A stretch of 64,000 nucleotides of DNA from Lytechinus pictus. Its lineage: Eukaryota. Each line of letters opens with the position of its first letter. Within the stretch, counting starts at the first letter, position 1. Location of the stretch: positions 12,276,001-12,340,000 of the forward strand of contig NC_087245.1 of assembly GCF_037042905.1 (NCBI RefSeq). The letters run 5' to 3'. The notes beneath the pieces are model-generated. The model did no database searches. It was not told the DNA's origin and was given only the letters and a program-made list of their open reading frames with translations. The position numbers were made by a program, and so were the translations under genes. Below, one piece after another: positions 9,601-36,600 of this stretch.

Positions 9601-12600
9601 TTACATTTTTTGGGGGGGCATTGAACTTTGTCAAGGATATAAAAACATACATAAAAAGTTGCATCTTTCTTTCAAGTACAGATCATAGGAAGTGAAATCA
9701 AACATGTAAATACCTATTACAAAATAAATAGTCCAAAAAAATTAATGAAACTGAGGTAAAATCCCACAAAACTGAAAATAGATAAATGTACTAACCTGAT
9801 AATGATGCCATTCTCAACAGAGAAGCTGTCTGTTGGTAGACCAGCAATATTCCAAGCCCTAATCTGGACCTGGTCTCCAAGAGTGTTACTAAGAGAGAAC
9901 TCTGCTGATGTTGGGATTCCATTAGCACTGACTTCGCTGAACCATTCTTTGATTTGATCCTGTATGAAAATAACATCTCAGCATTATTTCCGTATTCATT
10001 ATGATGCAAAGAATTGTGCTCATCTCCATATACTACCCATTAACATGAGTTTGGAATTGCAACAGATTATCTGAGCAACATGAGAGAAAGAAATATCATT
10101 CATACAAGGTGTAAGCCATGTTGTGTCTTGCCCACTTGTGAAAATGACCAGAAAATATCGCGATTTGCAAGGGCACGCAACAGAATTGTCTCAAAAGTTC
10201 ATTGTGAAATAACTGGGATGGAATAACATTTGTCGTAAGAGTCTTGCATACTACATGTAAACTTTAATTCTGACCTCAAAATGACCTTTGACCTTACCAT
10301 GTGACCTCCAAACACAATGCAGGTCTCCTAAGTACAGCTACAACCCAAGTTTGATTTGAAATTGACTTACGGATGCGGAGTTATGTATCATAAGAGAGTC
10401 TTGCATGTAAACTTTAATGTTGACCTAAAAATGACTTTTGACCTTACCATGTGACCTCCGACTGCAGCATATCATACAGGTCCCCTAAGTACATTTACAA
10501 TCCAAGTTTGGTTGAAAAGAGACTTACGGTTGCAGAGTTATCTGTAATAAGAGAGTCTTGCATGTAAACTTTAACGCAGACCTGAAAATGAACTTTGACC
10601 TTACCATGTGACCTCCGACTGCAGCATGACATGCAGGTCCCCGAAATACATCTACTATTTAAGTTTGGCTGAAAAGTGACTTACAATTGCAGAGTTATGT
10701 GTCATAAGAGTCTTGCATGTAAACTTTAACGTTGACCTGAAAATGACATTTGACCTTACCATGTGACCTCTGACTGCAGTATAACATGCAGGTCCCCTAA
10801 GTACATCTACCATCTAAGTTTGGTTGAAAAGTGACTTACGGCTGCAGAGTAATGTGTCATAAGAGTTCCATATGGAATAGAGAATTTTACTTTAGAAACT
10901 ATCTTGATTTTTTTATAACCCATTATTTTTTATATATTGATGTACCACAATACTATCAAAGTTTATTGACCCTAAATGACCTTTGACCTTGGTCATGACG
11001 GATTCATGTCAAATTTTGCTTGATTACATGCTCATAAAATCATACATAAAAAAAGTCTCTGAATTTAGTAATTTGATTACACTAAAATAAAATTCCAATG
11101 AAATTCAAATGCTAAAAATCAGCACGCACGGCATAAAATCAATATACGATCTTATCACATGACCTATTACATGAGAGAAATTAAAATAGAAATTATCATT
11201 AAGACAATAAAGTTGTCGATGTAGGCGCAGTATAGCAAGAGTACTGCGTATTGCGCCGATAGAAAACATCCCCCAAAATGAACTACAACATCGAACCGTG
11301 CGTGATGACGCTCAAAGATAGAAAATTGGCGCCCTAAAAAATCGACAGCAGACGAGAATCTATAAATAAATAGACTGGCCAAAACTTGGTCGATTTGACA
11401 CCGCCAACAACTACAATGAACAATAATTGGATTTTATGGTTCTGAGTGGAATAATTGACAGTTGACACATTTTTTGAAGCAACAGATGCATTCTTCTCAA
11501 CATTCATGATCGTGTGAATGCCGAACTACTGGTTAAACATTTTACATGTTTTAGGCAGTCTTAATTTCATTCGTATTAATGCCGCTCACCTCGGCAATGA
11601 ACTAAACTTTTAAATAGCCTTCCCTCTCAAAACGTGCATAATTATGAACTTGCATTTTAAGACAATTACCACTTAACAAATATAGTAAAATCGCGCTTGA
11701 TCAACGTTATTACAGAAAGCGGAGTGTTCGAAGATTTTATTTATTTTACTCCTAAGCAAACGCACCTGGTGAAATCCAGACTCTGTTTGGAAATGGTTGA
11801 AATTGGTTCAATAGCAGCTTTCATACCCGTCAAAGCAGATACTCGATGGCTGACGTCAAAATCAACTTTGTCTCTTGCAAGGGGGTAAAGGCGAATCGCT
11901 ACAACCAACGCTTCGAGCCCAAAGACTTGAATCATCACCAATACCAACGCCATTGTCATTATTGCCTTTATTAGATGGAAACAACTTTGTCTTTAGAAAG
12001 GGAACTCCATGCTAGGAGGTATAGGCGAGTGGCGAAAAAAAAAATCGACGCTTAACTACAAAGGACATAAGTCATCATTGACACCACTTCTCTTATTGAT
12101 CATCAAAATGGCATCAACGACGAGGATGGATCAAAGGAACCGAATTTCTTTGAGTTGAACTTCTCTGCTTTCCATTACATTGATGATTTATGGTTACTAT
12201 AGAGATTTAAAAAAAAAACCGGCAAGACTTGAACCAATCGTCTGAGATGTTGTGACGCAAGGTTGTGTGATAGCGAATTTCTTCCGACATCGGCAAATAA
12301 AGGTAACTTTGGAATCATGATGAAGGATATTCACCAGTTCAGTACTAATAATCTGCACAACGACTGGTGAAAATTCATTTCTTCGATACTTCAAGAGCAA
12401 GGAAAGAGATCGAGATATCAAATGATCTCTATGTCCTACTTAAATTTAAGATATATTTACACTTCACATACTGAGTCCAAGTGCTAACGAGAACATGGAT
12501 TGTATCAATTATGACATTATTCAGATACGAGATTTTTATTCAAAGTGATCACTATACGAGTAACGTTTGTCACATCAATCACATTAGTTTCATATTTCTT

Positions 12601-33600: not shown

Positions 33601-36600
33601 AAGTCTGCAAACTAGACTCTAAAAAAAATAAAATCATACACTACTATGATGTAAAAATGTTGAGGCATGCTTACACATTGTACAGGAGACAAAAGTTAAA
33701 CAAACCCACGAGGTTTGCTTCTGCACTCAAATAAATCAACCTTTCAACTAAATGTGACATATGAGGACACCTCAGAAGGTGAAATATGCACAAATATTTA
33801 GGAGATGAGGAAATTAGTGATGTAGCAATGTGAAATTAATTGGTAAAGAAAACTTAAGAATCAAAGTGTAGGCAACTGATTGAAAAAGGGACTGGGAAGA
33901 AAACTGACTAATTATTTAAGTAGAAACATAAATATGCTTGATGAATGTGATAATAAATGATGAAGTTTGATAAATCACATATTGATTAAATTACAGAACT
34001 TTGAATGGAACATCAAAAACTACTACATGTATATGAAAATGAACAAGAATAAATAAAATATGTCAGTACTGAAAGAGTATAATTTCATCATCATGCACTC
34101 GATCTTCGCTTGGCAAATAATCATAAATGTCAAGTAGTTGTACTTAACATTTGCAAAATGATTGCTGCTTTTGAATACCTTAATTGCTTTCTCTTCCATT
34201 CATGAAGTTGTGATAAAATACATTAAAACATCATTCATTTATTTTTAATCGACATTTGTTTGAAATAAAAAGAACCCTCCCAAATATGAAAGTATTGATT
34301 AATATAAAGAACTTACCTTTTTTGCATTCATTTGAATTTTCTCTTTGGCAGTTGCTGACTCTCTTTATACAAAGTAAATTCTTTTTTTTTCTTCTATTCA
34401 TCCTCGTCTGGCTCCCCTTCTTCATCTCACCCTTCTTTCTTTTTCCTCTTTTTTCTTCATTTTCTTTTTCATATGCTCTTCTGTTTGCTTTTATGTAATC
34501 TCTGCCTCTTTTATTTTTCTATTTCCCATTTCCCCTCCTCCTCCTCCCCCTCCTTTCTCCCCTATAAGCAGAAATTTGAATCATATTATACATGTATTTT
34601 CTCTTGAGATATTGCACATTTCTTTCTCCCCTCCATCTTCCTCTTATTCTCAATCTGTTTCCTCTTATGACTCTCTCTTTCTTTTTTTTCTTCTTTTGAA
34701 AGCCATCAAAATGCACTGAATCTCTTTGTTGCATGCCAATTTACATCACAAGTTTAGATTGCAGCTGTAGCACTAATGGGCAAGTGACAGGTAATACAGC
34801 TTTGGAAGAGATAGCAAACATTGTAAATATGATATCCATAAATAATGAGTCAAATCAGTGCCTTCTCTCATCACACGCATCGGCCATTCAGCAAACATCA
34901 CAATAATATTTCAGCAGATCAAGGCTACATACACTAATTATTCAATAATATATCCTATGATCTCATCATAAAAAAAGACTGTGCTAGTTTCTACTCACCA
35001 GTCTATAGGCAGATGTGAATGCACCAAGGTATGCAACCAGACCAGAAGAAATGAGCACATCACCAGTCAAGTTGATATAGAGTTTACCAAGGTCAGCGGC
35101 TGATTGGTTCCATCTAAAATACAGATAATTTTCAATCTTTAATAGGTGGCATTGACAGAAACTTGCAATCAATTCAAAGTATAAATCAATCATATTATAT
35201 AGATTACTGCTCTTTTCCTTGAAACAAAAATGAAAGTAAACTTTGTAATAAATTTCTTTTAATGCCCAGTTAGAAAGTTTAAATATATTTTCTTTCATTC
35301 CATTGTTATAGGTGTTATAGGTTTGTTTAGTTCAATAAAATTATATCAAAATCCACCTTTTAAAAAGCAGTCTTTTTCAGCATGTCCATAGAATGCTTGA
35401 TGTAATGATTTAAAACATTTGATTAAACTCAATTTTTTGCACAAAATGAATGAGGGTTATTTAAAACTGATAGCAAAACAATTATTTAGAATGAAAATTT
35501 TATGCACAGGACAATTAACCTTGAAAGCTTGTAGACAAAATATGAGTTCAGTTGAAAGAGAGGTCTCCTGCTTAAAAACTTACAAACAATATGAATAATG
35601 CAGCATCATTGTAATAGTATATGTTGACTGAGTACATCAAATTGAAATTACCCTATTTCTGACATGATGAAGAGGCTATTGTAGAGTCATGAATATATCA
35701 TTGTGATATGGTAAGGCCCATACTAATAAGTGACTTTTAAATACTGGTATGAAAAATATTCATGAAGGATTTTCTTTCAAAAAATAGCTTTGAAAAATTG
35801 GCCCTGTGATTTTTTTTTACCACAGATTTTTAAGAGGTCATGTGGGCTTGAATTAAGCCACTTTGTTTTATGATAATAGAGGAATAATATCACTATTACC
35901 TATCCAGGAGGCAGTGTAAAATTCTTTCTTTTTATTTTCATCCATCTCATCTTTTGCTCATGGGGGCAATTTCAAAGGGTTGAGAAATTGACAAACAAGT
36001 CGTTGCCCTGTGATTATTTTACTGAACATATATGCCTCTGCTAAAATCTGAAAAAAATTTACCTGTCTTTCTCTCCTCCTAATCCACCAATGAGTTGCTC
36101 AGCTCTGTCAAGTTTCTTGGAACACAGATCTACCTGATTCTCAAGATCTAGCTTCTTCTTCTTGTTAGCTTCAAGTTTGTCCTGGAAGAATAATTCAATG
36201 GTTTTTACTATCATAAATAGCAATCATTTATAGTGTCGCCACTTTATTAGATCATAGGGTGAGGGGGGCAGCAGAGAGGTCCTCAAACCAGCTCAGTGCA
36301 GCAATTTGTAAATCTGATGAAGCTCGTTCCAAGATATACTTCATCATAAATGAAATACAACATAAATTTGGATTCCACACTACATGTACATGTATATGCA
36401 CAAACATCAAAAATATAAAACATGAAAATTATAAATGATATGTGACCTATTACACAATAAATAAAAATATACATTTATAGAAATATGCACAGGATGACTG
36501 ACCAATGAGATGACCATATAGATATACTGATTGTACCTATGTATAGAAAAACAAGAGACTTAAAATCTTCAATTGGCTGAAGATATTGAAAGTGATTAAT

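Follow-up and report, generated by a model that had tools for sequence, protein, structure and literature searches.

Why should three genes for G-protein-coupled receptors (GPCRs) lie inside one intron of a cilium motor gene? The question is raised by a 64,000-nucleotide stretch of the sea urchin Lytechinus pictus genome (contig NC_087245.1, positions 12,276,001 to 12,340,000; hereafter the window, whose own numbering is used throughout), in which a first-pass annotation had placed an uncharacterised cluster of three receptors antisense within a giant intron of a DNAH7-type axonemal dynein heavy-chain gene. Analyses of the window, of the corresponding loci in other echinoderms and of RNA runs indicated that the cluster is real, intact and nested as claimed, and that nesting in the same intron is shared by sea urchins and a sea cucumber and is not private to one species. 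The receptors, referred to below as G1, G2 and G3 (GPCR 1, 2 and 3 in Table 1), are probably independent functional genes that became locked into an essential host gene, rather than members of a regulatory partnership with it.

The host intron and its receptor genes

On the minus strand the last base of dynein exon A (...SAYRL) is 34999 and GT follows at 34998/34997, while AG at 9961/9960 immediately precedes exon B (DQIKEW...), which begins at 9959; the junction of the two exons is of phase 0. When the exon A and exon B peptides were aligned to mammalian DNAH7 (PDB chains 9fqr_Xw and 8j07_g2), the residues matched by exon B began directly after those matched by exon A (Table 1), and therefore no residue is missing between the exons. 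In the protein, the intron falls where the stalk (Pfam MT) ends and AAA5 (Pfam AAA_9) begins. DNAH7 was the best match of exon A, and exon B matched DNAH7, DNAH12 and DNAH3 about equally. A transcript contig of 10,871 bases from run X1 covers exon B exactly and continues past 9960 into the final bases of exon A, in reverse complement, which is direct transcript evidence that the whole intron is spliced out as one piece. Since the largest other dynein intron in the window measures about 3.7 kb, the description of a single 25-kb intron among introns shorter than 4 kb was borne out. The window contains no runs of N, and a misjoin is excluded because the window and the independently assembled L. 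variegatus genome run colinear over 12.9-33.6 kb (85-93% identity), the spliced contig also bridging the intron.

The intron contains exactly three ORFs (open reading frames) of at least 150 amino acids; each lies on the plus strand, i.e. antisense to the dynein. The public G1 protein is 369 amino acids long and begins at the second Met, G2 is 97% identical to the L. variegatus 'G-protein coupled receptor moody-like', and G3 starts at the ATG at 25287, in agreement with the public protein P0016, which matches it and has the same length (343 amino acids). A start of G3 at the TTG at 25260 was rejected as a bacterial-code artefact of the ORF listing, the eukaryotic start being the ATG.

All three proteins belong to class A. 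Each matched the full Pfam 7tm_1 profile (PF00001, positions 1-260 of 260) with E values of 1e-36 to 1e-38 and scores of 126-133 bits against a curated cut-off of 30.5. The seven-transmembrane (7TM) call rests on this profile, as simple hydropathy did not cleanly resolve seven separate helices. The class-A hallmarks were all present in G1, G2 and G3, namely GN in transmembrane helix (TM) 1, LAxxD (as LAITD) in TM2, the conserved Arg, CWxP in TM6 and NPxxY in TM7, together with the Cys at the start of TM3 that pairs with a Cys of the second extracellular loop. These hallmarks were invariant across eight orthologs with one exception: Ala replaces the Tyr of the RY pair in the G2/3-type receptor of Diadema and in protein P0005. 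The acidic residue ahead of the conserved Arg is missing, the motif reading TRY in G1 and CRY in G2 and G3; this is not an argument against class A, since GPR84 likewise lacks the acidic residue of DRY and carries the variant GRY. An Rfam scan of the intron gave no match. Neither AATAAA nor ATTAAA occurs in 24567-25286, from the G2 stop to the G3 start, and therefore G2 and G3 may lie on one transcript or rely on a non-canonical signal.

In the comparison with L. variegatus (dS, the synonymous divergence between the two species, about 0.10) the ratio of nonsynonymous to synonymous divergence (dN/dS) was lowest for G1 and highest for G3 (Table 1). Synonymous sites were saturated between G1 and its Diadema ortholog, for which the proportion of nonsynonymous differences (pN) was 0.22 and dN/dS at most 0.09; G2 compared with G3 gave a dN/dS of 0.22. 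Judged from these ratios, G1, G2 and G3 are under purifying selection, and the low values in every copy argue that all three are working genes. The first-pass description of three intact antisense 7TM ORFs in one dynein intron is confirmed.

Table 1. Features of the dynein intron and its surroundings (window positions)
Feature	Positions	Strand	Details
Host intron of the DNAH7-type dynein heavy-chain gene	9960-34998	-	25,039 bases, GT-AG, phase 0
Dynein exon A (...SAYRL)	34999-35113	-	DNAH7 residues 2890-2927; E 1.3e-12; Pfam MT positions 296-332
Dynein exon B (DQIKEW...ENGIII)	9796-9959	-	DNAH7 residues 2928-2981; Pfam AAA_9 start; RNA depth 2-4
GPCR 1 (G1-type)	13181-14299	+	372 amino acids from first ATG; intronless; dN/dS 0.035 vs L. 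variegatus
GPCR 2 (G2/3-type)	23571-24566	+	331 amino acids; intronless; dN/dS 0.13 vs L. variegatus
GPCR 3 (G2/3-type, tandem duplicate of GPCR 2)	25287-26318	+	343 amino acids; dN/dS 0.19 vs L. variegatus
CpG-non-depleted domain enclosing all three receptors	11001-30000		CpG observed/expected 0.93 vs 0.32 in rest of window
Young high-copy mobile-element insertion, CpG-poor	21055-22546		Internal 157-192-base tandem repeats; gap in L. variegatus colinearity
Related tandem-repeat block at left edge of CpG domain	10254-11099		40-base core 10957-10997

The remainder of the dynein gene was followed by reading stop-free segments, which located about 45 further exons on the minus strand, colinear with the protein and covering the linker and AAA1 to AAA6. 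Ten dynein exons were checked against Pfam; they included AAA_6 near 59-60 kb, AAA_7 at 52 kb, AAA_lid_1 at 47 kb, AAA_8 at 40 kb, AAA_9 at 5 kb and Dynein_heavy at 1.2 kb. The order along the minus strand was AAA_6, AAA_7, AAA_lid_1, AAA_8, MT, AAA_9 and Dynein_heavy, which is that of a colinear motor. A genome-wide search with Pfam MT recovered a single exon of the host dynein and was a poor route to exon mapping. The dynein exon at 46518-46880 (minus strand), between AAA3 and AAA4, encodes an EF-hand-like loop whose Pfam EF-hand match (E about 3e-4) falls under the curated cut-offs. Asp-rich or Met-rich stop-free runs at 56515-56770 and 39256-39600 (minus strand) adjoin dynein exons and resemble intronic trinucleotide repeats, not coding sequence.

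Nesting and orthology across echinoderm classes

The first-pass annotation had proposed a check of the orthologous DNAH7 intron in other species and had raised the possibility that the nesting is species-private. A dynein gene of L. variegatus encoding 4013 amino acids contains orthologs of all three receptors, with order and orientation unchanged. In Diadema antillarum a G1-type gene comes after the ortholog of exon B (87% identical), and one G2/3-type gene lies 9 kb beyond it; these two receptors lie antisense within a 4014-amino-acid dynein gene, and exon A was not met in the 23.5 kb read from the exon B side. In the sea cucumber Apostichopus japonicus (locus L016) the exon series is fully colinear: nine exons precede exon A (5133-5246), one receptor gene (10001-11041) stands between it and exon B (15505-15666), and three further exons follow, all on one strand. 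The sea cucumber intron, 5247-15504 (10.2 kb), is thus the same intron and the largest in that 21-kb locus, with the receptor in sense to the dynein. In the sea star Asterias amurensis the annotation places one ortholog within a 4022-amino-acid dynein gene and in sense to it; no dynein exon was found within 10 kb on either side of this receptor, and therefore the intron there is at least 21 kb long. Across the relatives, the dynein orthologs that hold receptors measure 4006-4022 amino acids.

Receptors are consequently present in the orthologous intron of L. variegatus and the sea cucumber and inside the dynein gene of Diadema and Asterias, and the nesting is not confined to one species, being antisense in L. 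variegatus and Diadema and in sense within the same intron of Apostichopus. The G1 ortholog is 68% identical in Diadema and 44% identical in the sea cucumber. Comparison of Lytechinus with Diadema revealed no conserved non-coding element, only the receptor ORFs and the dynein exons being conserved. The European Nucleotide Archive (ENA) contig of ortholog P0002 lists a second 7TM gene 9.5 kb further on, and adjacent accession numbers hint that G2 and G3 are also neighbours in Strongylocentrotus purpuratus. On the short, gapped Saccoglossus contig no dynein exon was found, and the crinoid Anneissia 'Tre1-like' gene sits in a non-dynein gene.

A maximum-likelihood tree of 35 proteins showed that the nested receptors of the sea cucumber, the sea star and the sea urchins, with one ENA protein, form one clade (98/93), which excludes nine other L. 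pictus paralogs, the crinoid Tre1-like protein and the Saccoglossus GPR84-like protein. The echinoid members of the clade split into G1 (100/100) and G2/3 (100/100) groups, and the split between G2 and G3 is common to Lytechinus and S. purpuratus but not to Diadema. Searched against the 812-Mb L. pictus genome, G2 found G3 at 61% identity, G1 at 42% and the next match at 29%. The nested receptors are therefore not part of the large sea-urchin expansions, since they have only three close relatives, themselves included, in their own genome; a membership in the large echinoderm GPCR expansions, to which the first-pass annotation had pointed, is at odds also with the single copies in sea cucumber and sea star.

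Outside the cluster the closest paralog, with 29% identity to G2, was located at C1:12225960-12226916 (locus L006), about 50 kb to the left of the window on the 3' side of the dynein. Orthologous to S. purpuratus XP_790735, it clusters with the crinoid 'Tre1-like' protein, whose clade neighbours that of the nested receptors. Its position hints that the nested lineage arose through local duplication.

Among solved structures the best match of the receptors was GPR84 (E 1.3e-27), with 100 bits against 87 for aminergic receptors; the lead over 5-HT4 is 13 bits only and identity to GPR84 is low. Automatic public names point in the same direction, the Lytechinus and Diadema proteins being called 'moody-like' and the Saccoglossus relative 'GPR84-like'. 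GPR84, moody and Tre1 are orphan or lipid-sensing class-A receptors, and the nested receptors may belong with them; we infer, rather than observe, the signalling properties and ligand class of the nested proteins. Neither GPR84 nor fly moody nor Tre1 is known to sit in a dynein gene, and the literature searched yielded no account of a GPCR gene lying within a dynein gene. Echinoderm 'moody/Tre1' homologs have to date only been listed (PMC8540695). The nested receptor lineage, conserved and strongly constrained, is unstudied in echinoderms.

Transcripts, CpG content and repeats of the intron

Three ribosomal-RNA-depleted stranded RNA runs of L. pictus (X19-X21) were sampled, about 6% of each run being read. 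Exon B was covered with the first mate on the plus strand, as expected for a minus-strand dynein, at the depth given in Table 1, while the G1 region (11100-14899) had zero depth at a detection floor of about one tenth of the dynein level. Among the contigs of X1 the dynein mRNA reached depth 111, and G1 was absent. G1 was accordingly without coverage in four runs that contain dynein transcripts (X19-X21 and X1). Runs X1-X4 contained 41-63% of the sampled words of the stretch that holds G2 and G3 (22800-26800); in X1 these words are unlikely to derive from DNA or from host pre-mRNA, because the adjoining 3.8 kb around G1 is uncovered in that run. This indirect evidence suggests that G2 and G3 are probably transcribed.

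Short repeat cores at 10900-11099 and 14900-15299 gathered thousands of RNA reads whose ends run into unlike sequence. These reads are transcripts of other copies of abundant repeats and not local expression; the first of the two stretches includes the core of the left-edge repeat block (Table 1), whose thousands of reads originate in other copies.

The three receptors share a CpG-non-depleted domain whose edges are sharp to within 500 bases and whose right edge recurs in L. variegatus. Its base composition suggests that it is a germline-unmethylated block within a methylated, transcribed gene body. CpG richness reaches over the dynein 3' exons in Diadema, and in the sea cucumber and the sea star it is found only in the receptor ORF itself; since these extents differ, the extent of the domain is lineage-specific.

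The mobile-element insertion within the domain lies about 1 kb upstream of G2 and contains its tandem units at 21377-22220. A first look at the genome gave more than 5,000 candidate copies, 40 scored copies showed 94-96% identity, and the element is absent at the orthologous site of L. variegatus. As it is high-copy and missing in L. variegatus, its TGACCT-rich units are to be regarded as a repeat family and not as a conserved control region.

Why the receptors stayed in the intron

The most prosaic accounts of the locus, an assembly misjoin or a set of decaying pseudogenes or retrocopies, are barely credible: no point in their favour was found, a spliced transcript bridges the intron, three independent assemblies are colinear, and every species has undisrupted reading frames, whose dN/dS is far less than 1. 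It is also very improbable that the receptors are fast-expanding, lineage-specific chemosensory GPCRs of sea urchins that arrived in the intron recently. They resemble the expanded sea-urchin rhodopsin-type families in being intronless, tandem and rhodopsin-type, and weak Pfam matches to nematode chemoreceptor families could be taken in the same sense; unlike those families, however, they make up a group of three in the 812-Mb genome with the next relative at 29%, they are strongly constrained, and they have single-copy orthologs at the same host gene in the sea cucumber and the sea star.

A functional coupling is the alternative in line with the co-expression or mutual exclusion with the dynein that the first-pass annotation had considered. 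According to this explanation receptors and dynein share a regulatory domain and are either made together in motile-cilium or sperm cells or silenced by read-through transcription. The retention of the same-intron nesting between sea urchins and sea cucumber is consistent with it, as are the sharply bounded CpG-rich domain inside a CpG-depleted host gene and the occurrence in X1-X4 of both a high-depth dynein mRNA contig and words of G2 and G3, X1 having nothing around G1. Nevertheless, the relative orientation of receptor and dynein differs between classes, and therefore no strand-specific mechanism can be ancestral; Lytechinus and Diadema share no conserved non-coding element, G1 is silent in samples that express the dynein, and the extent of the CpG domain is not kept in Diadema, sea cucumber or sea star. 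As far as coupling or antisense interplay could be tested, the orientation reversed within the sea cucumber's same intron, the missing non-coding conservation and the absence of G1 reads all spoke against it, and we regard it as unlikely. A stronger version, in which the long residence is itself functional, appears distinctly doubtful: the receptors, at least G2 and G3, would be under host control in motile-ciliated or sperm cells as a sensor-to-motor module, and the 19-kb CpG block would be a maintained chromatin domain that shields them against gene-body methylation.

The alternative named in the first-pass annotation, that of a passive passenger, fits better than partnership because orientation and copy number have changed, flanking sequence is not conserved and G1 is not co-expressed; it can be sharpened to a passenger that is unable to leave without breaking an essential host. 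Several points weigh against this preferred reading. Retention in one intron across classes could also mean shared regulation, co-expression of G2 and G3 with the dynein is possible in some sample given that X1-X4 hold both, the receptor of Asterias is placed no more closely than within the dynein gene, and the argument for lock-in is one of inference.

According to the reading of receptors locked into their host, G1, G2 and G3 would be three independent, intronless orphan class-A receptor genes of the GPR84/moody/Tre1-like group. One ancestral copy would have entered the intron between stalk and AAA5 before the lineages of sea urchins and sea cucumbers separated, and probably ahead of the sea star divergence as well; these class-level splits are about 450-500 million years old. 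This copy would have been retained because any rearrangement that moved it out would cut the essential host gene, while changes confined to the intron would be tolerated. Such changes would include an inversion on the echinoid stem, the duplication into G1 and G2/3 types, also placed on the echinoid stem, and the tandem duplication that gave G2 and G3 before the split between Lytechinus and Strongylocentrotus. Each receptor would presumably use its own promoter within the CpG-rich and presumably unmethylated domain, its expression being limited to particular cells or stages and not tied to that of the dynein.

Nested genes in long introns are common in animals and show no orientation bias (PMC11694760), and long-conserved nesting is documented for LRRTM genes in alpha-catenin introns (PMC3933685). 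As in such conserved pairs, a small membrane-protein gene resides here in the largest intron of a big host and is kept across deep divergences. Unlike those pairs, the present one consists of an axonemal dynein as host and a GPCR as guest, and the guest has switched orientation between classes and yet kept the same intron. The receptors also multiplied in place, from one to two and then three copies, and not through duplication of the whole host/guest pair.

The nested receptor provides a clean and datable case of a nested gene that outlasted large-scale genome change: one receptor lineage is found across echinoderm classes in the same intron of an essential cilia-motor gene, with the guest inverted and multiplied in place. 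The CpG-rich block of Lytechinus, lying in a CpG-depleted transcribed gene, is useful for the study of how invertebrate gene-body methylation is targeted, and the GPR84/moody/Tre1 group to which the receptors are likened is linked, in other animals, with cell migration and with barrier function. The locus thus offers a natural test case for the question whether nested genes are kept by regulatory interplay with their host or by an inability to get out.

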